Origin: Diadema antillarum
Taxonomy: Eukaryota
Direction: 5' to 3'
NCBI RefSeq assembly: GCF_040938485.1
Contig: NW_027271032.1
Location: forward strand, 3,286,001-3,350,000
DNA: 64,000 nt
The translations under genes and the position numbers were made by a program. Of the stretch, positions 11,518 through 46,801 are shown one piece after another. The notes beneath the pieces are model-generated. The model saw nothing but the letters and a program-made list of their open reading frames with translations. It did no database searches and had not been told where the DNA came from. The first letter of the stretch is position 1; every line of letters starts with the position of its first letter.

Positions 11518-12289
11518 CATAGGCTTTATCACTCGTGGACCTTTTCTTTTGGTAATACAATGTTGAGCTACAAACCTCTCATTTTTCATGACAGAAGTTT
11601 AATACTTAAATGTCAAACAGAACAACTCTATCTGTAGTCTAAAGATTTTGTATAATTTCCCTAAAGAGGCTTACCAGGTATCAAGCCTGCAACAAAAATG
11701 TGGGAGCGACAGAGACCTTAAAGGCATTATTTACCATTTGCAGATGAAACAAAAACCCAGCTTTAGTGCTTCAAAATATCTCTAAAATGTGAGTTAGGCA
11801 TAAAAACAACCATTGTAAAAATTTTAATCAGGATAATCAGTGTTACTTATTGTTAACTATGCAAAATGTGAATAATAGTTATAATAACATTGTTTCTAGA
11901 CTAAACCATCTACAGTAAAATATATGGTTTGATGACAAAAACAGTGATATCTCAGTGTATCTTAGATTTTATTGCAAAATGTTTATATGTTTTGTGATAC
12001 AACTGACCTCCAAATATACATCAAATGTGATAACTCGAAAACTTTTAAAATCACTGCTCCCAAAGGTAAACTGTCCCTTCAACTACAGTGGGAGTGCACA
12101 TACTGCAACAACATTTGCAAATCAGAAACAAACTGGTCAATATTGAGGTTACTGACACTGGACTGAAAGGCCTTGGACGCAGGCTCTTAAAGGGACACAG
12201 TCCTCACGAAATTTAAAAAAATATGTTGTTGTTGGTACCTCCAATGAACATGAGGATCAGGCGTGATCCTCTTATCTACGAGGTACATC

Positions 12290-12451
12290 GACCACCTATC
12301 TGTTATAGTATGCTATTATCCCGATAATTGCCCTAACATCGAACAAAGAAACTTTTACACAGTAAGCCTACCTTACACCGCCCGTGTCCCCCAGGCCGCA
12401 CGCACGTCCGCCCGTACGCACGTAACCAGTCACCCGCCATGACTCTTCCTC
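12290..12451. repeat. DIRS inverted terminal repeat (element 3' end)
   Basis: Reverse complement of 19082-19243; identical by eye, and both give the same peptide in the ORF track (MAGDWLRAYGRTCVRPGGHGRCKVGLLCKSFFVRC). Confidence 0.95.
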
Positions 12452-12531
12452 CAGTTCCACACAACCAGGTCACCCGCAAACGGGACACACAGTCAAGTCG
12501 CGCCGCGAGGCGAGGGGAAGGAGGGGGGGAC

Positions 12532-12630
12532 ACAGATAGGTGGTCGATGTACCTCGTAGATAAGAGGATCACGCCTGATCCTCATGATCTACATCAGTAC
12601 ATCTGACCACCTATCTGTTATAGTATGCTA
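12532..12630. other. DIRS internal complementary region (ICR)
   Basis: 12532-12586 is the reverse complement of the left terminus 12249-12303, and 12587-12630 is the reverse complement of the right terminus 19218-19261. Confidence 0.95.
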
Positions 12631-12676
12631 GACCGACACGGACTAACAAGGGAGGCTTGGCTGTAAGGCGGTGTAA

Positions 12677-15604
12677 TCAACGGGACTTCGCCGCTGACAA
12701 AAGGGCAGCCCTAGAGAAGGAGGGCACAGCAGCGGGAACGTCCCGCAGATAGAAAGAAATGAAAGAATTGGGAGAACGCCAATAGGCTGCTCTTTGGATC
12801 TCCTCAACCGACACTCCTGCGAATAAGGCCCAGGAGGCGCTGATCCCGCGAGTGTCATGAGCGCGAGGCGCTACCCCCGGGGAGAGAGCCTCTGAGCCAG
12901 CCGCTTTGATAGCGGCAACAATCCACTTCGATATGGTGTCTTTAGAGGCAGCAGAGAAGGGCTCCTTAGTCACTACAAAGAGTTGATCCCCGGAGCGTCG
13001 GTCCTTGGTACGGGCGCAGTAATATTTCAGGGCCCGTACCGGACACCAGACTTTGTCCTCTGCGACAGAGGAATGAGCGGCCAGAGGTTGGATGAAGATC
13101 TCAACCGGACTGGAGGCTGCTGTCTGATTTTTGGCCACATACGAAGGGCTAGGGATTAGCCTCACACCAGCCCGTTCCCACCGTATGTGGCCCTGCAGGG
13201 TAGACAAAGCATGCAGCGCACTACGGCGCTGCCCAGATGCGATAGCCAAGAGAAAAACCGTTTTGATGGTTAAATCCCTAAGGGAGGCTTCGGCCAAGGG
13301 TTCGAAAGGCGACCTGGCAAGCGCCTCTAGCACACGGGGAAGGCTCCAGGAAGGGAGCAATCTCCTCGTCGGGGGGCGTTCCAAGAAAAAGACGCGAAGT
13401 AAGCCTGAGAGGGCGGGGGCAGTGGATATAGTGGACCCATCCTCGAAGCCAGTATGCACTGCCGCGATGGCGGAGCGATACCCCCTAATGGTAGAGATGG
13501 TTAAGCCTCTGTCAAAGAGGGAAACCAAAAAGTCCGCCACATCTCTTAGAGGGGCTGAACGGGGATCCACCCCGTGAGATTGGCACCAGGAATAGTATCC
13601 AGCCAAACGGGAATTGTAAGCCTCCCGGGTGGATTCTCTCCGGCTGCGGGCAACGAGTGAAGCAACTCGTTCTGACAAGCCCGCCTGAGTACCGGATTCC
13701 CTGATAAGGGCCAGGCAATCAGGTGGAGAGAGCTCGGTCGGGGATGTAGAGCTCCCGACACCGGCTGCGCTATTAGATCTGGGCGAGCTGGAAGGAGCCT
13801 TGGGCTCCCCACCAGTAGGTTTGTGAGCTCTAGGAACCAAGACCTCCTTGGCCACCAGGGGGCTATAAGGAGGATGGTAGCCTGGTCCCGCCTGATCTTG
13901 CGCAGGACGCGGGGAATGAGGGGGAAGGGTGGGAACGCATAGCCTCTGAATCCCTTCCACTGGAAGGAGAAGGCGTCCAGCCGCCAGGCTGCGGGGTCCT
14001 GCACTCTCGTGCAGTACCTGGGTAGCTGAGCATTCAGCTCCGAGGCGAAGAGATCCACCTCCAGTGGTGGCATCTGATTCACCAGTCGGCTCATGATATG
14101 CGGGTCGAGTCTCCACTCGGAGGGGAGGACCCGGCCTCGGGACAGGAAGTCCGCAATGAGGTTGTCCCTGCCCGGTATATACGAGGCCATGGGAAAAATC
14201 CCCCTGCGCCTGCACCATCTCCACAGTGTGGCAGCGAGGGCGTTCAAGCGTGGGGAATGCGTGCCGCCCTGCTTGTTGATGTATGCCGCCACTGTGACAT
14301 TGTCTGTGCGGATCAACACAGTCTGGTTTTGGAGTAGAGGTAAGAAGTGGTGGAGGCTCAGGATAACCGCTTGAAACTCCAGCACATTGATGTGGGGGAG
14401 GGTAGCCGAAAGGCACCAGTCCCCATAGGCATGGAGCCCCTGACAGTGACCGCCCCAACCCTTGTGGGATGCATCGGTAGTCACTGTGAGCGAGGGATGG
14501 GGGGGCTGCAGAGGGCTGCCCCTGCTCAGAAACTCCGGGCAACACCATCGCCTGAATAACAGGCGGGTGGCCGGGGGCAGGGGAACCATTTTCGTCAAGG
14601 GGTCCCGAGACGGATGGAAATGACTGAGCAGATGGATCTGCAGGGGGCGCATGTGCAGTCGACAGTCCGGCAGCACATCGACCAGGCTCGCCAGATATCC
14701 TAGGAACTGAAGGAAGGATCTGGCAGGGACTCGTCGCTGCCGTCTGAAACGGCGGGCGGCGGATATGATCGTAGACACCCGAGCTGGGCTGGGGCGCGCC
14801 AGCTGACGGGGGATGTCTATCACTGCACCCAGGAAGGTTGGGCGTTGTGTGGGCACGAGCTCCGACTTCTCCCAATTTATGAGAAACCCGAGAGACTGTA
14901 CTGTTCTCAGCAGAAAAGACAACTGGTGAGAGAGCAGGGTCTGGGAGCTGGCTGCTAACAGCCAATCGTCGAGGTAGCAAAATATCCTCAGACCCTGTTG
15001 CCTGAGGAAGGCTGCTACACACGCGACGAGCCTGGTGAATAGGCGTGGTGCGGGTTTCAGGCCGAAAGGCAGGGCGCGGAAGCGGAACATGTTCCCCTCG
15101 AAGAAGAAACCCAGCAGGTCCCTGGATGCTGGTGCTATCGGGACGTGGAGGTAAGCATCCCTGAGATCTATGGACACTGTCCAATCTCCCGGTCTGAGGC
15201 AAGGGAGTATGGACGCCAATGTCTCCATTCGAAAATGTTCCGTACGGATGTGCCTGTTTATTCTCTTGAGGTTGAGAATGAGGCGAAAGCTCCCCGAGCG
15301 CTTGGGAACCAGAAAGGTAGGGGAAAGGGATAACCGCGGGTGGTCGCGGATCCGTTCCACTGCCCCCTTCGCTAAGAGGGCGGCGATCTCGGCCGCCATG
15401 CCTCTGTGTCTGAGGGGAGGCAAGCGAGGGGGGGAAAGACGGATGACGCCTCCGGGTAAGGGAGTGGCGAGCTCGATGGAGAAGCCACCGCCTACAACGG
15501 AGAGCACGAAGGCGTCGTCCGTAATGGCCGCCCAGGCCGGCTGGAAGGCCTGAAGGCGGCCGCCCACCCCGGCTGGGGGGGCCTGAAGCGCTCGGGGCAA
15601 GGAG
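12677..15604 (-). CDS. DIRS ORF3: tyrosine recombinase (YR) with long N-terminal region overlapping RT
   Basis: C-terminal YR motifs GQRRSALHAL, KNQT, AHDTR, YWRS and FISFY (Tyr at 12749-12751). The track ORF 12677-15202 starts at TTG; manual translation shows the frame is open up to the gag stop (15604). First ATG is at 14548. Confidence 0.9.
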   Translation of the reverse strand, partial: LLAPSASGPPSRGGRPPSGLPAGLGGHYGRRLRALRCRRWLLHRARHSLTRRRHPSFPPSLASPQTQRHGGRDRRPLSEGGSGTDPRPPAVIPFPYLSGSQALGELSPHSQPQENKQAHPYGTFSNGDIGVHTPLPQTGRLDSVHRSQGCLPPRPDSTSIQGPAGFLLRGEHVPLPRPAFRPETRTTPIHQARRVCSSLPQATGSEDILLPRRLAVSSQLPDPALSPVVFSAENSTVSRVSHKLGEVGARAHTTPNLPGCSDRHPPSAGAPQPSSGVYDHIRRPPFQTAATSPCQILPSVPRISGEPGRCAAGLSTAHAPPADPSAQSFPSVSGPLDENGSPAPGHPPVIQAMVLPGVSEQGQPSAAPPSLAHSDYRCIPQGLGRSLSGAPCLWGLVPFGYPPPHQCAGVSSGYPEPPPLLTSTPKPDCVDPHRQCHSGGIHQQAGRHAFPTLERPRCHTVEMVQAQGDFSHGLVYTGQGQPHCGLPVPRPGPPLRVETRPAYHEPTGESDATTGGGSLRLGAECSATQVLHESAGPRSLAAGRLLLPVEGIQRLCVPTLPPHSPRPAQDQAGPGYHPPYSPLVAKEVLVPRAHKPTGGEPKAPSSSPRSNSAAGVGSSTSPTELSPPDCLALIRESGTQAGLSERVASLVARSRRESTREAYNSRLAGYYSWCQSHGVDPRSAPLRDVADFLVSLFDRGLTISTIRGYRSAIAAVHTGFEDGSTISTAPALSGLLRVFFLERPPTRRLLPSWSLPRVLEALARSPFEPLAEASLRDLTIKTVFLLAIASGQRRSALHALSTLQGHIRWERAGVRLIPSPSYVAKNQTAASSPVEIFIQPLAAHSSVAEDKVWCPVRALKYYCARTKDRRSGDQLFVVTKEPFSAASKDTISKWIVAAIKAAGSEALSPGVAPRAHDTRGISASWALFAGVSVEEIQRAAYWRSPNSFISFYLRDVPAAVPSFSRAALLSAAKSR

Positions 15605-15606
15605 TC
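13546..15606 (-). CDS. DIRS ORF2: reverse transcriptase + RNase H + DNA N6-adenine-methyltransferase-like domain
   Basis: VGGRL..F..AW, DLRDAYLHVPI, LPFGL, YLDD (14965-14976), TDAS/HINVLE/RTDN/IADFLSR (RNase H) and DLFAS...YAFPPF (MT). The start is uncertain: the track uses TTG at 15600, the first ATG is at 15399, and the frame is open from 15726. Confidence 0.95.
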   Translation of the reverse strand, partial: DSLPRALQAPPAGVGGRLQAFQPAWAAITDDAFVLSVVGGGFSIELATPLPGGVIRLSPPRLPPLRHRGMAAEIAALLAKGAVERIRDHPRLSLSPTFLVPKRSGSFRLILNLKRINRHIRTEHFRMETLASILPCLRPGDWTVSIDLRDAYLHVPIAPASRDLLGFFFEGNMFRFRALPFGLKPAPRLFTRLVACVAAFLRQQGLRIFCYLDDWLLAASSQTLLSHQLSFLLRTVQSLGFLINWEKSELVPTQRPTFLGAVIDIPRQLARPSPARVSTIISAARRFRRQRRVPARSFLQFLGYLASLVDVLPDCRLHMRPLQIHLLSHFHPSRDPLTKMVPLPPATRLLFRRWCCPEFLSRGSPLQPPHPSLTVTTDASHKGWGGHCQGLHAYGDWCLSATLPHINVLEFQAVILSLHHFLPLLQNQTVLIRTDNVTVAAYINKQGGTHSPRLNALAATLWRWCRRRGIFPMASYIPGRDNLIADFLSRGRVLPSEWRLDPHIMSRLVNQMPPLEVDLFASELNAQLPRYCTRVQDPAAWRLDAFSFQWKGFRGYAFPPFPLIPRVLRKIRRDQATILLIAPWWPRRSWFLELTNLLVGSPRLLPARPDLIAQPVSGALHPRPSSLHLIAWPLSGNPVLRRACQNELLHSLPAAGENPPGRLTIPVWLDTIPGANLTGWIPVQPL

Positions 15607-18010
15607 AAAAGCCGCCGCGGCCCCTGGCGGCCGGGCGGGTTGATCCTCGCTGTCTGTCTCTACCCCTGTGACTGCGGCGCCCGCGGCCTGAGCGGCGGGG
15701 CGGCTTAGGGGGAGGCAAGGTGACCGTTACGCGGGGGGGTCCCGCCGAGGGGCGAGCGGCCCCGCGGGGTCGGGGGGCTCGTGGTTGGACGGATCTGAGC
15801 TGCGTGGCCAATTCACGGGCCTGTTGGCACCTAGCTAACTCATCCCTGATCCGAGGTGCAAACTGACCTGAGAACAGAAAGGGGCCCTCGCAGGGCATGT
15901 CAGCGGTCAGCTGAACCCGCTGTCTAGCTGAAAAACCCAGTGCTTCTAGAGCCAGGTTCCTGCGACGACGAGTCGTGTACAAGGCTGCACGGGTAGACTG
16001 TTTCCACAGTTGTTCCGAGATAGACATAAGCAGTGCGTCGAGCAACTGCCTGTCTTCTGGAGAGACCCGCAGGTCGTCTGCTTGTACGGCCAAATTGGTC
16101 AGAGCACCCGCGTACGCTGCCAGACGCATCGTGGATCTGGCCAAGATGGACATATGCGTCCACCTCTTGTCTTCCTCAAGAAAGGAGCGTCTGCGTAGGG
16201 GGTTGACCTTCCCCACGTAATCGCCTAGAGCAAGCAGCTCGGGGGATAGCGTCTCTGGGGACAGAAAACGGGCCATGTCGCCCGGTTGAAAAGTGAACGC
16301 TCTTCTCAAACCAGGAGGGCCACCCCTGGGGGACGGTTCACGAGCGATGCGCCCGTACTCATCCTTGAAGTCGGCTGTGAGTGGAATGCCGGGATGAGTA
16401 CCCGATCCCCCCCGGAAGAGTCGGGACGCCTGGGGCTGTTGCTCCGCAGGGTCCGGGCGGACCGTATAAAACTCTTCCAGGTAGCGGAGGAGCAAAGCTT
16501 CCGCCTCCTCACTGAGGTGTTTCAAACCAGGCGGGGCCTCGGTCCCAATCAGGGAGGGCGCCGCCGATGAGGTGGACATAGACTCCCACTCTGAAGAGGG
16601 GTCAGACTCTGAGGCAGGTACCCCGAGTTGATCAGAGAGGGGTGGGAAAGGGGGAGGCGCTAGTGCTGGGGAGAAAGTCTCCGCTGGCAGTGCGCTATCG
16701 TCCAACAAGGAACGGGCCGTCAGGCCCGAGGCAGAGCGTGGGATAGGGGGCGGTAAGAGCAGACCACCAGTAGAGGTAGCTACCGCAGCCTGACTGACAG
16801 CGGCCGGGGCCGGGCGATGCAGTCGAAGGCTCTCTGCCTGAGAGGGGAAAGTTTCCTCCCCGGGCGGAGCCCCTAGTGCCGCGGGAGCACGGCTCGTGCC
16901 GGCTATGAGCTCCCCGCGTGGCGGCAGTGGGGCCAAGGGCACTGAAGAAGCAGCGGTCGATTCGGCCGGAAGGCCGGAGAGCGACCAGCCTCGGCTCTCT
17001 GCGAAGCGGCTGAACACCTCAAAGAGTTCAGCTTCACTAGGCTGAGCCCTAGGAGCCTTCTTCTTCTTTTTGCCCGAGGTTTTGGACTTCTTGGAAGAGG
17101 GAGAGGCAGAAGGGGCCGTGGAAGGCCTTTTCTTAGCCTTCTTCTTCCTCTTCAGAGTCCCAAGGGACGAGCTTAAGGGCTGTCCGGCCGGTGGGGTGCC
17201 GGTCGAGGACGCCGCCGAAAGCTGCCAGTCCCGAGCGGGAGGCTCAACCGGCGCCGCCCGAGCGGACGGGCCGGGGAGGGTCCCAGTGGTGGTAGGTGCC
17301 GGCTTGCTAGGAGCGCGGGCAGTTACCAACCTAGGGCCATGCACCCTGGGGTGCTGGCCGAGTCGGAGGGAGGAGGGGGCCCGCGTGGTGGGCAGCCGGG
17401 GCGGACCCGCAGCTGGCGCACCACCGCTCCCGAACCCCGCCGCCGCCGGCCTGGGAGAGCCGGGTGGTGGGGAACGGGCGGGGCCGAGGCTGGACGCCGC
17501 TGCAGCCGCAGGGCTGCGAGCAGGCGGGGTGGGGGCGGCTCGCATGAGCGAAGGCGCTCGTGGCGGCACCCCACCGCTCTCTGTCACCATGGGCCGGCTA
17601 GGGCCGGGGGACGAGAGGCCAGCCAAACTCCGGTCAGGTCGCCAAGGACGACCACCCTCCTCCCCCGAATCACTTCCCTCAGAAGCGAGAATCTCAAGGG
17701 GCGGATCGGCGGAGCCGGATCCGAGCCCCTCCGGTTCAGGGACCGGCAAAGAGACTCCCTCCGCGAGGGAGTTCCGAGCAGAAAGCTCTGAGTCCGTCGG
17801 CCGTGCGGCCCCGGACGGAACCAGGGCCGGAGCCCTAAGTATGGGGGGGTGGGAGGATAGCCAAGCCTCCAACGTGGCCCACAAGGGGTCTGACCAAGTG
17901 GAGCACGTGGGACAGGGACTAGATCGGGTGCACGTGCGATGCAAAGCGCAAACTGGATGTGCGTCCCAATCTGGAATGGCCCGGCGACAAGAAGTGCATC
18001 TAAGAGTCAT
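15605..18010 (-). CDS. DIRS ORF1 gag-like protein (801 aa from ATG 18010)
   Basis: N-terminal Cys/His cluster CTSC..H..C..H..C..C..C, Pro/Ser/Ala-rich middle, K-rich patch, and DIRS-gag/LAP2alpha-like C-terminal helical region (RRRRNLAL..PCEGPFLFSG). The track ORF starts at 18076, but 18012-18076 looks intronic. Confidence 0.88.
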   Translation of the reverse strand: MTLRCTSCRRAIPDWDAHPVCALHRTCTRSSPCPTCSTWSDPLWATLEAWLSSHPPILRAPALVPSGAARPTDSELSARNSLAEGVSLPVPEPEGLGSGSADPPLEILASEGSDSGEEGGRPWRPDRSLAGLSSPGPSRPMVTESGGVPPRAPSLMRAAPTPPARSPAAAAASSLGPARSPPPGSPRPAAAGFGSGGAPAAGPPRLPTTRAPSSLRLGQHPRVHGPRLVTARAPSKPAPTTTGTLPGPSARAAPVEPPARDWQLSAASSTGTPPAGQPLSSSLGTLKRKKKAKKRPSTAPSASPSSKKSKTSGKKKKKAPRAQPSEAELFEVFSRFAESRGWSLSGLPAESTAASSVPLAPLPPRGELIAGTSRAPAALGAPPGEETFPSQAESLRLHRPAPAAVSQAAVATSTGGLLLPPPIPRSASGLTARSLLDDSALPAETFSPALAPPPFPPLSDQLGVPASESDPSSEWESMSTSSAAPSLIGTEAPPGLKHLSEEAEALLLRYLEEFYTVRPDPAEQQPQASRLFRGGSGTHPGIPLTADFKDEYGRIAREPSPRGGPPGLRRAFTFQPGDMARFLSPETLSPELLALGDYVGKVNPLRRRSFLEEDKRWTHMSILARSTMRLAAYAGALTNLAVQADDLRVSPEDRQLLDALLMSISEQLWKQSTRAALYTTRRRRNLALEALGFSARQRVQLTADMPCEGPFLFSGQFAPRIRDELARCQQARELATQLRSVQPRAPRPRGAARPSAGPPRVTVTLPPPKPPRRSGRGRRSHRGRDRQRGSTRPAARGRGGF

Positions 18011-18011
18011 C

Positions 18012-18628
18012 CTGTATAAAAGAGAAGAGGACTCAGTTAGCAACAACATAAAGAAAATGTAGACATGAATAAACATACAAGTATCTTTACAAGAAAGTGT
18101 ATGTTAAAACAAGGGACTCAAAAACCAAGTCAAAGTAGGCTTAAAAGCGTACAAGACAAGGGGCGGGAATTGGGCCGAGCTGGGCCGACAAAATTATCGT
18201 TGAAGGCTCAGCATAAAATACCCAAGAGACAGTAAACAAACATGAAACATGTGCGAAAAGGGTGAGAAAAACACCCAAACGAAATATAAAAGAAGCCCCA
18301 GAGGCGCGCCATAGGCGTGGGCCACCTCAATAAAGGCCTAAGGGGGGCACGACCCACATGAAACATGCACGGAACCGAGTCTGGGGACGGAAACCCAAAG
18401 ACAAGGTGCAATTAAGTCCCAAAGGGCTAGCCATAAGGTCTACAAACCATAATAAGGACCCTAATGGCGTGCCATACGACTACAAGTTGAGTAAATATGG
18501 CCAAAGGGCTTGCCATAGGTCAACGATCGGTAATAATGACGCTAATGGCGTGCCATAGCCCAAGCATGGCGAAGATGGCCACCCACGGCCAGCCATAGGC
18601 TAACTACGGTAACGAGATACTAACTCAC
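18012..18628 (-). other. Putative spliceosomal intron in the DIRS 5' leader
   Basis: Donor CC|GTGAGT at 18628, branch CTAAC (A at 18037), pyrimidine tract TCCTCTTCTCTTTTATACAG|G ATG directly before the gag ATG. Confidence 0.55.
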
Positions 18629-19081
18629 GGCGTAGAGCCTACGAAGAAACCTCGATGTTTCTAACACCTTCAAAAAGGTCAAAAAACACCAAAAAACTCC
18701 CGAGAAGGTATAAAAGCATGAACGGGAGGAGGAAAAAACATAAAAGGAACGACAAAAAGCCGAACCGTGGTAGGCTAAGACGAGAAAGGGGGAAAAAACC
18801 CGCCAGTGCGTGGCGAGAAGCGAGGCACGGTGCACACACCATACAAACGTATGGGGCAGCGCGAAACAAAACCGCGGAGGTTTGGATCGAAATAAAATTC
18901 ACGATTTCGCCCCTTTCTCGGTAACAAATGATGACAAAAACGATCTACAAATGTGATACAACAATCAAGGAGCAAAAATAAGGAAAGATATTGCCTGATT
19001 GCTGGGGGATCCCGCTGATGCAGTCGGGTTATCACGAGAGATCGAAAACACGTCTAAACGCGATGGAGGGCGAACAGGGAA

Positions 19082-19243
19082 GAGGAAGAGTCATGGCGGG
19101 TGACTGGTTACGTGCGTACGGGCGGACGTGCGTGCGGCCTGGGGGACACGGGCGGTGTAAGGTAGGCTTACTGTGTAAAAGTTTCTTTGTTCGATGTTAG
19201 GGCAATTATCGGGATAATAGCATACTATAACAGATAGGTGGTC
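19082..19243. repeat. DIRS inverted terminal repeat (element 5' end)
   Basis: Reverse complement of 12290-12451. Confidence 0.95.
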
Positions 19244-19498
19244 AGATGTACTGATGTAGATCTACTTTCACCAAAAACAAACTTTAAAATCACCAAATAA
19301 GCTCGTACATTTTGGTTGAAAAAGTGTGACTCTGCATGGTGAATATGCTAATGAGCAAGTCTTGGCGGAGAGTCATACGTCGTCGATGCACAACTCTTCC
19401 CAGCCGTGTTCTGCTCGTTATCCGTACGCTCCCTAGTTTACCCGGATGCATGAAGACGTCGGTGGCTACTCCGACTTGTATTTGACATTGTTTCTACG

Positions 19499-33821: not shown

Positions 33822-34601
33822 NNNNNNNNNNNNNNNNNNNNNNNNNNNNNNNNNNNNNNNNNNNNNNNNNNNNNNNNNNNNNNNNNNNNNNNNNNNNNNN
33901 NNNNNNNNNNNNNNNNNNNNNNNNNNNNNNNNNNNNNNNNNNNNNNNNNNNNNNNNNNNNNNNNNNNNNNNNNNNNNNNNTAGGTCTGACACCTGCACGC
34001 CTATCATCACTTATACATCATACTGAGGGAAATATCTCATGCGGAGCACGCATGTACATCAATAGGGGCGGGGGAAAGATTCAAAATCAGGGGGGGGGGG
34101 GGCTTTCTTTTTTTAACTGTTTTACTTCTTCTTTTTTTTAGGCATTAAGAGATACTGTATTCAAGTTTTCAGGGAGCCTCCTGCAGAATACAGAGGACTT
34201 GGCAGCTGTGCACTCACAATGTGAGACGGTCCCACACACTTGGAAGGTTTATATCGTGACTGTTCATGTCCCTCTCATCCAACGTTAGCAACGTCACCTA
34301 AGTTTAGAATGCTCCAAAAGTGGAATTTGGTGGGCACTGTACATACAGCTTGTGTGTTAGAGGTTCCCGCACACCCCAAGGTTACAGTGGCAGTTATGCC
34401 CTCTCAGCCACTTTGGGCATGGTCTCAGTGACCAGTAACACCCGACTCAGAGGGACATGAGTCGAAGTGCTTCAGGAGCACACCTTGGGCACTGCTTTGT
34501 GAATAAATTGGGTAGGAAACTCATTAAATCAGCAGGCAAACTCATTGAAATTTGAATTAGTCTGAGAGGAGTGTGGTCTAATGCTTCTGGTCAAAACTCA
34601 C

Positions 34602-44069: not shown

Positions 44070-46801
44070 TGAAACAGCTCATCCTGATATTCATAAAAAC
44101 ACAGGGTTGCACACTAACCCATTTTCTCTACTGGTCCAACCTGTCCGTCAGACCAGTACAAGTAGGTACCCAGTTTTTCCATTTTTTCACTGGTCCATTC
44201 CTGATAAAGTTACTAGTCTGACAGTAATTTTTACTGGTCAGGGACCGTCAGACCAGTGCCAGTGTGCAGCCTTGCATAGAGATTGTGTGTAAGCATACCA
44301 TCCCCTCTAGCAAGAGGCAAAACACTCTGTCCCTCGGATAGGACATAAAATGGAGGTCCCGTGTGGGAGAGAGTAAGAACTCATGCACGTAAAAGATCCC
44401 GCTTCATTCATTCATCGCAAAGAGCAGGGTTTTTAACCCAGTGAAGTGGTCCCAACTCACATCCAACTGGACCCCATGGTCCCATAGCTGAATATGGGCT
44501 ATCCAGCCNNNNNNNNNNNNNNNNNNNNNNNNNNNNNNNNNNNNNNNNNNNNNNNNNNNNNNNNNNNNNNNNNNNNNNNNNNNNNNNNNNNNNNNNNNNN
44601 NNNNNNNNNNNNNNNNNNNNNNNNNNNNNNNNNNNNNNNNNNNNNNNNNNNNNNNNNNNNTCTGCAGGTTTGATGAGGTCCTGGATCCTGCCGTCATCTG
44701 GGATGATGGTGGAGCCAGGCGAGGGGCCAGGTCTCTTCCTCGCTCCACTCTCATCTCCTGCAAACTTAGCAGTGGTCACTACCTTGCGAGGAGCTATCCC
44801 AAACTCCCCCATGTCCTGTGAAAACATATATGAGAGTTTGATACATTATGAAATGTTTCATTAATCATTCCATGATAAAGATTATTGTAATGTGCAAACA
44901 AAAAGGGATGTACATCAAAGAAAGCATCAATAGCTGACCTATCATTAGTCAACCCCTACTTTGTATTGCTTTTATTTGAGTATCAATATTACTGTTGGGT
45001 ATCAAATGCCAGAATTGATATCAAAGACTGCTTATAATTTCTTCAAGATTCATTTGCAATGAATTAGAATATCACAGTCTACAACCAGTGCCCCATTTCA
45101 TAAAAGATGTTAGGATGGCAACTCTTGCTGGAATGACAATTTCCAATAGCAACAGCCAATCAGGAAGCTGGATTCTTGTCATTACCATGACAATTGCCAT
45201 TTCAGCAAGAGTTGCTATCATATCAAGTTTTTATGAAATGGGGCCCAGATTGACCTGTCGATGCCCATGAGCAACAAGAAATATGGCATCGCTTCTTTGA
45301 GCCAGAATTCACTGAAACTTTTGAAGAAGAGAAGACACACATTCTGCATTTGTACTAATACCATGGGGATGAAATCATAATTAGTCCACGATGCACACTA
45401 TAGTTCATGATACTTTAGCAAAAATGCTAAAAAAAGCAAAAAGTTAATACAGGTTTTCAATCAATATCTTGTCCAACTCACATCTACATCCATGAAATCC
45501 TCTGCACGCTGGGCCTGCTTCTCTGCTCGTTTCTCTCGAGTTGACACAAATGTCAATGGAGTGAAACCTGCAGCATGAAAACAATGATTAAACTCTTATG
45601 CTGTAAAGAAATGATAGAGCTTCTACACTGTCTATTCCATATATTTACATTTCCAGCAAGCATATGGTAATGATCTACTTTTAAAGTGCAGTTACCAAAT
45701 ACGGTGACACCACATTTGCTCCGGCGAAAATTACTCTGGACTTATTTCCTCCATGGACTTAGGGTTAAGATTAGGGCTGTGATAGGGTTTTACCATAGAT
45801 TTAATTTAATGTAAGCATTAGGATTAGGGTTAGATTTATGTTTTTGGGTAGAATTTATGTTTGGTTTAGCACACAGATACTTCATAGGAGCAACTGTCGC
45901 AGAAGCACATGTCATGGAACCACCAAATACTACTTCTTAATAAGGTGCATTTAAACAGACTACAAGAAATAACAACATTGTAATTCTTCTAAGACAGGAA
46001 CCAACTTGCTGTATGAAATTCCCTATTTCATGCATGCCTGAATGGAACAGGAAGCTACATGAATTAATCCCTTGTGTGCCAATGAGTCGAATGGGAACAA
46101 ATTTCACACACGAACCAATGGAGAGGAAATGGAGATGGCACACAGAGGGTTAAACAAGTATGAAAAGAAGTCATCAAATACTGTATACGCCGAATATTTC
46201 ACAAGGTTTTTATTTTCGCGAATTTCGCGAGTCAGGTGCTATTCGCGAAATTAAAGACACACGAAAATATCGACTCTGATCCCGATGTGAATGTGACGTA
46301 AGCGTGTACACTTCTCCGTTCAATACAGGCATCCATGATCACGAATTTCACCACTTCCAAAATTGTCGGGAAGTCCTGATTCGCGAAAATTTAGACTCGC
46401 GAAATATATGGCGTATACAGTACTACCTATTGTAAATCAATCACAAAATTGTGCACTGTATTGCATTGTGCAAAAACCCAGCCCCACACTTCCACACATA
46501 TTTGACAAGTGGTAGGGACAGTGTGCATCCATGATTACGTTAACAAGGGTAGGGTAGTGTAGAGCTGTCTGGCAAAAAGAAGTGGGGGCAGTCATGAAAA
46601 ACAATTTCCCAATGTACCAATACTTGCACAATGAAACGTGTTCAAGCAGAAAAGCCACCACAAACTCACCTTCTTTGGACCCAACAGTGTTGAAGAAGCC
46701 AGCTGAGAAGCCCCCTGTGAAGGCGCCATGGAACCGCTGACGACCCTGCCGGTCTCGCACCACCTGGTCCTTGACTGCAATGGGCTTTGGGAGAGGCTCA
46801 T
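34602..46801 (-). CDS. GPATCH1: G-patch domain-containing protein 1, partial multi-exon gene (11 coding exons traced)
   Basis: Exons translate to hallmark GPATCH1 motifs [43 protein letters not shown] (G-patch), [29 protein letters not shown] and [19 protein letters not shown]. Splice sites are GT-AG and phases chain consistently, except for one frameshift. Confidence 0.95.
35247..35311 (-). repeat. tRNA-derived (SINE-head-like) sequence, copy 1
   Basis: A-box-like TGGTCTGGTAGAG, B box GGTTCGAAGCC, anticodon-arm-like CCTG-TCCGGTGAT-CAGG. Confidence 0.6.
35368..35767. repeat. 141-bp inverted repeat pair (35368-35508 / 35627-35767) enclosing a second tRNA-like copy (35510-35578)
   Basis: The arms are reverse complements with scattered mismatches; the centre is a direct repeat of 35247-35345. 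Confidence 0.8.
35812..35981 (-). CDS. GPATCH1: GPATCH1 detected exon 10
   Basis: tccag|[58 protein letters not shown]|gtgag. Confidence 0.92.
36651..36926 (-). CDS. GPATCH1: GPATCH1 detected exon 9
   Basis: cccag|[21 protein letters not shown]...SRWD...[24 protein letters not shown]|gtcag. Confidence 0.9.
38748..38913 (-). CDS. GPATCH1: GPATCH1 detected exon 8
   Basis: ggaag|[17 protein letters not shown]...[12 protein letters not shown]|gtagg. Confidence 0.88.
39691..39749 (-). CDS. GPATCH1: GPATCH1 detected exon 7
   Basis: tctag|[21 protein letters not shown]|gtaag. Confidence 0.85.
40326..40470 (-). CDS. GPATCH1: GPATCH1 detected exon 6
   Basis: accag|[49 protein letters not shown]|gtgat. 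Confidence 0.92.
42472..42793 (-). CDS. GPATCH1: GPATCH1 detected exon 5 (apparent 1-nt frameshift)
   Basis: [11 protein letters not shown]..acidic tract..[27 protein letters not shown] (TGA 42507-42509), while [13 protein letters not shown]|gtgag lies in another frame. Confidence 0.88.
42990..43225. mobile_element. TACTGTA-ended MITE
   Basis: TACTGTATAAGC/GCTTATACAGTA termini and a TTCGCGA-rich interior. Confidence 0.65.
43282..43379 (-). CDS. GPATCH1: GPATCH1 detected exon 4 (G-patch)
   Basis: tgcag|[34 protein letters not shown]|gtgag. Confidence 0.95.
43860..43944. mobile_element. 85-bp piggyBac-like MITE, copy 5 (diverged)
   Basis: Aligns with 32561-32645; followed by TTAA. Confidence 0.7.
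44102..44274. mobile_element. hAT-like MITE (CAGGGTTGCACACT...AGTGTGCAGCCTTG)
   Basis: 14-bp imperfect TIR; a truncated relative lies at about 63690-63799 on the minus strand. Confidence 0.6.
44661..44815 (-). CDS. GPATCH1: GPATCH1 detected exon 3 (donor hidden in N gap)
   Basis: cacag|[18 protein letters not shown]...IQDLIKPA; runs into the gap at 44660. Confidence 0.9.
45482..45567 (-). CDS. GPATCH1: GPATCH1 detected exon 2
   Basis: tgcag|GT TTC..; (G)[28 protein letters not shown]|gtgag. Confidence 0.92.
46179..46422. mobile_element. TACTGTA-ended MITE
   Basis: Perfect 13-bp TIR TACTGTATACGCC/GGCGTATACAGTA. Confidence 0.75.
46670..46801 (-). CDS. GPATCH1: GPATCH1 detected exon 1 (homologous to exon 2)
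   Basis: cacag|AT GAG CCT..; (D)[43 protein letters not shown]; G|gtgag. Confidence 0.95.

Follow-up and report, generated by a model that had tools for sequence, protein, structure and literature searches.

The window analysed here is a stretch of 64,000 nucleotides (nt) from Diadema antillarum (NCBI RefSeq assembly GCF_040938485.1, contig NW_027271032.1, positions 3,286,001 to 3,350,000 of the forward strand), and its subject is a DIRS1-like retrotransposon on the minus strand (Table 1). The element carries inverted terminal repeats (ITRs; 12283–12451 and 19251–19082, 99.4% identity), an internal complementary region (12532–12630) that matches both element termini, and open reading frames (ORFs) for gag, reverse transcriptase (RT)/RNase H and a tyrosine recombinase (YR), which together place it among the DIRS1-like elements. 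Its best protein match, at 98% identity, is a Diadema antillarum gene model, P0001, listed at NCBI as an "uncharacterized protein", and its proteins have more than 1300 DIRS-type homologues. Pfam searches gave a weak RT_RNaseH match beside RVT_1 in the RT frame and, in the recombinase, PF02899 (Phage_int_SAM_1, E = 3.5e-4) and PF00589 (Phage_integrase, E = 1.3e-3), both under the gathering score. The gag ORF had no Pfam match, and the search of the element's ORFs returned no protease, no DDE integrase and no further domains. The C-terminal third of the RT ORF, the putative methyltransferase region, aligns well with relatives.

The original prediction for this locus, made from the sequence alone, held that the stop codon at the end of gag might serve as a combined switch for termination, readthrough and +1 frameshifting, and its account of the reading frames was borne out. 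On the minus strand gag ends GGC GGC TTT TGA CTC CTT, with the TGA at 15607–15605. The gag frame (frame 0) continues beyond it without a stop for 975 codons to 12677; its first Met is residue 352 of this continuation (ATG at 14548), and the recombinase part contains none. The part of frame 0 that is overprinted on RT is called X below. The RT frame lies in +1 relative to gag, opens at 15726 after a TAA (15729–15727) and reads ..AAAAFDSLPRALQAPPAGVGGRLQAFQPAW; its first ATG, at 15399, lies 56 codons downstream of the conserved VGGRL motif, and there is none upstream. The predicted Gag length of 801 amino acids corresponds to a start at the third in-frame ATG (MTLRC), whereas the first ATG gives 823.

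Table 1. Features of the DIRS1-like element, in window positions
Feature	Positions	Strand	Remarks
DIRS1-like retrotransposon, ~7 kb, apparently intact	12246..19262	minus	ITRs, internal complementary region, protein match
gag ORF, 823 amino acids from first ATG	15605..18076	minus	Ends TGA 15607–15605; C-terminal tail R/G/P-rich
Candidate recoding site UUU_UGA_C	15604..15610	minus	Last gag codon TTT 15610–15608, TGA 15607–15605, +4 C 15604
RT/RNase H/putative methyltransferase frame	13546..15726	minus	+1 relative to gag, 40-codon gag overlap; Pfam RVT_1 E = 3e-19
Frame-0 continuation of gag, 975 codons	12677..15604	minus	~650-codon linker X overprinted on RT, then tyrosine recombinase
Tyrosine recombinase region	12746..13654	minus	SAM-like N-domain residues 651–717, catalytic domain residues 777–953 of the frame-0 ORF
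Near-invariant 11-nt block CCCCGAGCGCU	15587..15597	minus	7–17 nt after gag stop
Hairpin 1 (C-run pairs G-run)	15562..15582	minus	Starts 22 nt after the stop (+26)
Hairpin 2, 13 bp, over GGRLQA..AWAA codons	15526..15561	minus	Starts 43 nt after the stop (+47)
136-nt "intron" of NCBI model P0001, gag to RT frame	15704..15839	minus	GT..AG interval

For comparison we collected 80 loci from metagenome contigs and 10 through close protein matches; the set consists of metagenome contigs that share ancestry. At each locus the VGGRLxxFxxxW motif, the RT frame and the large upstream ORF were located, which yielded 63 non-identical junctions. In 50 of these, gag and a single stop are followed by a frame-0 ORF that either spans 600 codons or more or is still open where the contig ends, and RT lies in +1 in every case, at RT amino acid identities of 33–84% (median 40%). 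Among loci that have RT in +1 and a substantial gag, just two depart from this layout, and one of them is a poly-G length variant of another contig. The "long ORF overlap" of the published type recurs across the 50 junctions, with the recombinase ORF running back in frame with gag to the single stop. This spread shows that the layout of gag, stop, X and recombinase with RT in +1 is ancient, and the gag stop has the look of a conserved site of recoding and not of an accident of one copy.

The continuation of the gag frame is kept free of stops over its whole overlap with RT. As a null model we used synonymous-codon shuffles in the RT frame, 300 per locus. The window element has 0 frame-0 stops over RT where 16.2 are expected from the shuffles, and 28 in the third frame. 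Among 48 elements, 47 have 0 frame-0 stops over the approximately 675 codons that overlap RT/RNase H/methyltransferase; the shuffles gave a mean of 20.9 and never reached zero, and the third frame has 43. Identity of the encoded peptides between the window element and its relatives was 0.55 in frame 0 and 0.55 in the third frame at the upper end, then 0.43/0.42, 0.40/0.37 and 0.29/0.31, falling to 0.22/0.22, for pairs whose RT identity runs from 0.83 down to 0.42. The X peptide is 43% P, S, G and R, compared with 27% in RT, and a search against Pfam found no domain in it. Since frame 0 is open yet its peptide is no better conserved than that of the third frame, selection appears to act only on the passage of ribosomes, and the simplest reading is that ribosomes must cross X in frame 0 while the sequence of the product there would be irrelevant. 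Frame 0 is already open immediately after the gag stop, through the 16–187 nt between the stop and the RT motif, which argues for entry at the gag stop rather than at an internal start. AUGs in frame 0 are scarce, and their positions are not conserved. A long in-frame downstream ORF under selection, one of the features of type II programmed readthrough, follows the gag stop, and in the window element it extends for 975 codons.

The identity of the gag stop is strongly biased. Across the 50 junctions it is TGA in 42, TAG in 8 and TAA in none, whereas in the same elements the RT ORF ends in TGA 5, TAG 32 and TAA 12 times and the recombinase ORF in TGA 6, TAG 13 and TAA 21 times (Fisher's test for TGA enrichment at the gag stop, P = 2e-17, ignoring shared ancestry). 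The context 3' of the stop is also of interest, with TGA-C in 29 of the 50 (CTN in 24, including CTA in 11; CGG in 2; CAA in 3) and TAG-GGA in four. In the Beier-Grimm classes, UGA-CUA and UGA-CGG are the type II readthrough signals of Sindbis virus, o'nyong-nyong virus, Plautia stali intestine virus (PSIV), Venezuelan equine encephalitis virus and Colorado tick fever virus, and UAG-GGA is the type III signal of Moloney murine leukaemia virus (MoMLV) (PMC13517186). We consider it likely that the gag UGA is read through into X, as a pass-through linker, and on into the recombinase.

How the RT frame is reached is a separate question. An RT-frame ATG upstream of VGGRL is absent in 28 of the 50 elements, including the whole clade of the window element, where a DNA alignment shows that the initial "M" of the predicted RT proteins corresponds to GTG codons. 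With no ATG in its frame, RT would have to be made through a frame change or through non-AUG initiation. The shortest gag/RT overlap among the 50 junctions is 17 codons and the shortest distance from stop to motif is 16 nt, so that any shift site shared by all of them would lie close to the stop. The window's clade has ten members, in which TTTGA is invariant and the last gag codon is TTT in eight, ATT in one and GTT in one; a second clade (L008, L012, L019, L020, L024 and L032) has NTT-TGA in six of six, where N is T, A or C. In 14 of the 50 junctions gag ends in TTT, against a background of 1.7% for this codon, and on the RT tree NTT-TGA requires four state changes or more. TCC-TGA occurs in four junctions and CCC-TGA or CCC-TAG in four; UCC_UGA is the majority and CCC_UGA the minority shift site of antizyme (PMC5009743).

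As the original prediction pointed out, the TTT codon and the T of TGA together form UUUU, on which tRNA-Phe can re-pair in +1. A first base that varies while TT and the stop remain invariant is what a P-site slip onto UUU would leave, as at CUU_UGA_C of prfB. Within the clade, substitutions in the last four gag codons fall at gag third positions and alter the RT-frame residue (A to V, G or E), whereas those directly after the stop are synonymous in RT (TTG/CTA/CTC/TTA) and alter frame 0; this flip in phase places the frame switch at the stop. A test of substitution phase over all clades had 12 alignable pairs, mostly from one clade, and is only suggestive. The window site has the properties of a shifty stop, namely a stop in a weak context preceded by a P-site codon that can re-pair, and a +1 ORF that is open across the site and has no start of its own. 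For RT in the window's clade, a +1 shift exactly on UUU_UGA has, in our estimate, a little less than an even chance of being correct.

What the sequences directly establish is the arrangement of the ORFs and how deeply it is conserved, together with selection for openness, a biased choice of stop codon and the missing AUGs. To account for these features we propose, with a probability of roughly 0.45, that the gag stop of the window's DIRS1-like element is a programmed recoding site. Most ribosomes would terminate at the UGA and release Gag. Some would decode the weak UGA-C, remain in frame 0 through the approximately 650 codons that overlap RT, and then translate the tyrosine recombinase, which would form the C-terminus of a Gag-X-YR polyprotein. 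The RT/RNase H/methyltransferase ORF would be entered by a frame change at the gag stop or within a few codons of it; in the window's clade the likeliest shift would be a slip of peptidyl-tRNA-Phe from UUU to the overlapping UUU with UGA in the A site, giving Gag-RT. The junction peptides expected would be ..RGRGGF-X-LLAPSASGPPSR for readthrough and ..RGRGGF-DSLPR for the +1 shift. That readthrough and the +1 shift both take place at one and the same codon is a more tentative suggestion than the proposal as a whole, and that a single leaky stop would be an ancient three-way switch (Gag, Gag-X-YR and Gag-RT) in most DIRS1-like elements is more doubtful again.

Several observations weigh against this proposal. 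That readthrough and frameshifting occur, and in what ratios, we infer from sequence. An alignment of gag/pol junctions for conservation of TTT-TGA-C, suggested in the original prediction, gave NTT-TGA in ten of ten members of the window's own clade, but 24 of the 50 junctions end gag in codons (AGA, AGG, AAA, CAA, CAG, AAG and similar) that cannot re-pair in +1. The combined switch fared in the same way, its layout being conserved in 50 diverged junctions while the slippery UUUU is limited to particular clades. Across the superfamily the last codon of gag varies, so either several mechanisms are in use or the shift is independent of slippage. In 46% of loci the open RT frame extends further upstream of the gag stop than expected under codon permutation, which could reflect entry further upstream but is probably an effect of the T-poor, R/G/P-rich gag tail. 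The window element itself has UGA-CUC, in which the +4 C is present but the next codon is neither of the optimal CUA and CGG, and P-values from the comparison set are inflated by the ancestry that its loci share. The RNA downstream adds to these points: the minimum-free-energy fold of 15613–15500 (−57.2 kcal/mol) has a z of only −2.26 relative to dinucleotide shuffles, the two hairpins begin at +26 and +47, far past the approximately +9 to +16 at which known readthrough and frameshift stimulators begin (PMC13517186), and hairpin 2 overlaps the strongly conserved GGRL..W protein motif.

Both hairpins do fold as had been predicted and are present in that minimum-free-energy structure. The pairing of hairpin 1 is retained in eight of ten relatives with little covariation, and in hairpin 2, among close relatives, 5 of 12 pairs have changed on both sides with 89% of cells paired; a joint covariation score as high as that of the two hairpins was reached by 0 of 500 shuffles. 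According to the modelled folds, the hairpins are real structures that are poorly placed as stimulators. Given their distance from the stop, their overlap with motif-coding sequence and their clade-limited occurrence, we do not call them recoding stimulators, and the role given to them in the original prediction is not supported; its interpretation as a whole is partly supported.

No structure within 20 nt of the stop was found in the fold of the window element. That fold contains an outer helix at +15 which relatives do not preserve, and a candidate mini-hairpin (CCCC/GGGG) at +10 does not occur in the window element; both were set aside. A search around the stop for an adjacent stimulator of the prfB or antizyme type (a 5' element, or a 3' pseudoknot within a few nt) found none, and a search of 15300–15800 against Rfam gave no match. 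The GC-corrected folding energy averaged over the 50 junctions dips by only 1–4 kcal/mol around the stop and the motif, and we rejected a general role for downstream RNA structure because this dip is small and strong hairpins at FxxxW occur in some clades only. Such hairpins, of 8–12 bp and lying over or just after the FxxxW codons (motif +0 to +50), are seen in L017, L040, L070, L046, L007, L015 and L032, which belong to unrelated clades, and their register differs from that of the window hairpin.

Between the stop and hairpin 1 lies the block CCCCGAGCGCU, which is near-invariant in the 10 clade members (58–83% RT identity) and identical in seven. It ranks sixth among non-overlapping 12-nt windows over 1.56 kb, level with the RT catalytic motifs; the RT frame reads it as PRAL and frame 0 as PSA.

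The same junctions could be explained if readthrough is real but the +1 change takes place elsewhere, within the 40-codon overlap or a few codons past the stop, for example near CCCCGAGCGCU, so that two separate signals would be in use. The variable last gag codon across the superfamily, the 11-nt block, as conserved as the RT catalytic motifs, and the extended openness of RT upstream of the stop in many loci all fit this view. Within the clade, however, changes are gag-synonymous up to the stop and RT-synonymous immediately after it, NTT-TGA is invariant while neighbouring positions vary, and the block contains no recognisable +1 site; we regard a shift at another site as unlikely. About equally unlikely, in our view, is that RT, the recombinase or both are translated independently, through non-AUG initiation, an internal ribosome entry site, leaky scanning or termination-reinitiation, the in-frame recombinase ORF then being a historical accident. 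Termination-reinitiation is known in other retroelements. Some RT-frame ATG upstream of the motif is present in 22 of the 50 elements, a frame-0 AUG that would give a recombinase of 320–420 amino acids in 25 of 40, and in one clade (L034, L052 and L055) the recombinase ORF is not in the gag frame at all but starts about 300–400 nt into RT, twice with an ATG. Against this, ATG positions are not conserved, the other 28 elements lack an RT ATG, and the nearest usable frame-0 AUG would give a product of 513 amino acids in the window element and 593 in L081. Internal initiation also leaves unexplained why 47 of 48 elements have a frame 0 that is free of stops from the gag stop onwards over RT, and why TAA is avoided at the gag stop.

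Splicing is the remaining way in which the frames could be joined, by a 136-nt (3n+1) intron in 3' gag and an intron of about 62 nt near the RT stop (joint 13570/13507), and it is the arrangement embodied in P0001, which consists of gag residues 601–745, followed by the RT ORF starting at residue 8 and by frame 0 starting at GLTISTI. The sites are plausible in form (a slash marks the splice position): the first intron has GA/GTTAGC at 15840/15839 and a pyrimidine tract followed by AAG/ at 15704, the second G/GTGGAT and TTTCCCTCTTTGACAG/, and the RT-frame openness upstream of the gag stop, above the permutation expectation in that 46% of loci, would agree with a joint in 3' gag. Yet the closest relatives (L081, L082, L083 and L001) have no GT donor for the first intron at the aligned codons, the aligned (C/A)AG of its acceptor is a Q or K codon within a conserved PPPQ peptide, and members of the clade differ widely in gag/RT overlap, from 17 to 158 codons. 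Excision of the second intron would cost the recombinase half of its SAM-like N-domain (residues 651–699), and splicing offers no reason for 675 stop-free codons in frame 0. No joint at either intron site was found in contigs aligned to the region, which is weak evidence since these short contigs are probably multi-copy DNA; the same contigs show no pile-up of starts or ends. Gene predictors routinely create short introns to bridge frames, and with an unconserved donor and a damaged recombinase N-domain we rejected the Gnomon-type P0001 introns as predictor artefacts and consider splicing improbable. The two-intron bridging of P0001 over window 13507–15840 is probably an annotation artefact that would recur for every DIRS copy.

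In a sister DIRS clade (L034, L035, L052, L054, L055 and L057), gag, RT and recombinase each occupy a frame of their own; gag ends in TAA, overlaps RT by only 7–31 nt, and has a run of 8–12 G just before its stop. L054 and L055 are near-identical, and their unequal G-run lengths give unequal frames, a variation that could be assembly error or a transcriptional-slippage site. No canonical −1 heptamers were found in L034, L052 and L055, where poly-G runs make the frames unreliable.

The proposed recoding site shares features with several known systems. In MoMLV (gag-UAG-pol) and in alphaviruses, PSIV and coltiviruses (UGA), a single leaky in-frame stop likewise stands between structural and enzyme ORFs; the hexamers UGA-CUA, UGA-CGG and UAG-GGA are shared with the DIRS set, which also avoids UAA. 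Unlike these viruses, the DIRS product would cross approximately 650 codons overprinted on another gene before reaching the enzyme domain, and the window element has UGA-CUC, no conserved structure at +9 to +16 and a second enzyme ORF in +1. The prfB site (CUU_UGA_C) and those of antizyme (UCC_UGA, CCC_UGA and, in yeast, GCG_UGA_C) likewise have a UGA in poor context with a +1 ORF open across it; UUU_UGA_C would fully re-pair, the relative L008 has exactly CTT-TGA-C, and others have TCC-TGA or CCC-TGA/TAG. The DIRS site differs in having no Shine-Dalgarno-like element, no polyamine-sensing module and no adjacent pseudoknot, and whereas frame 0 of prfB and antizyme ends at the stop, that of DIRS continues as a long ORF.

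A +1 slip in animal cells with UUU in the P site and a slow A-site codon is also described for influenza A PA-X at UCC_UUU_CGU (PMC3498833); there the slow codon is a rare sense codon and not a stop, and no readthrough competes with the slip. Ty1, Ty3 and a few animal long terminal repeat elements likewise make Gag-Pol by a +1 shift, and the RT of the DIRS element is related to Ty3/gypsy. A 2003 survey, as cited in PMC5009743, counted only two of 51 animal elements with pol in +1. The shift sites of Ty1 and Ty3 (CUU_AGG_C and GCG_AGU_U) lack a stop codon, and no third product is made.

Overlap of the recombinase ORF with RT/RNase H/methyltransferase has been reported in half of 28 DIRS1-like elements (Piednoel et al. 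2011, PMC3266345). The overlap described here is the same one, although that report gives no single stop in frame with gag, no conservation of openness alone and no translation mechanism. The DIRS literature that we searched makes no mention of an in-frame stop, readthrough or frameshifting, though a remark in older papers is possible, and a 2016 review of frameshifting does not mention DIRS. The DIRS papers searched are likewise silent on how an RT and a recombinase without start codons arise, or why their overlap spans 2 kb, and DIRS elements are widespread in animals, fungi and protists. Our comparative data suggest that the overlap is a stop-free corridor in the gag frame, entered through a leaky stop at which RT would be reached by a +1 shift. 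This is of a known kind, retroelement gag-pol recoding, and if it holds it would answer an open question on DIRS gene expression and explain the long-noted "long ORF overlap". A new class of retroelement would join the users of recoding, and a natural competition between readthrough and a +1 shift at one codon would set the ratio of three polyproteins, to our knowledge for the first time. For annotation of DIRS elements the rule would then be to call no introns and to treat gag-stop-X-YR as a single product.

Some minor observations concern the ends of the gag and RT ORFs. Contigs from two runs of a related species carry a 189-nt in-frame deletion with non-canonical ends, corresponding to window 15624–15812, which drops most of the basic gag tail and retains the last gag codons and the stop. 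At the end of the RT ORF (window 13546–13551, for example), the last codon is CTN in 29 of 49 loci and the stop is TAG in 32 of 49; this stop sits inside the recombinase reading frame. Elsewhere in the window there are two runs of N (33822–33980 and 44509–44660), which are assembly gaps or masked sequence.

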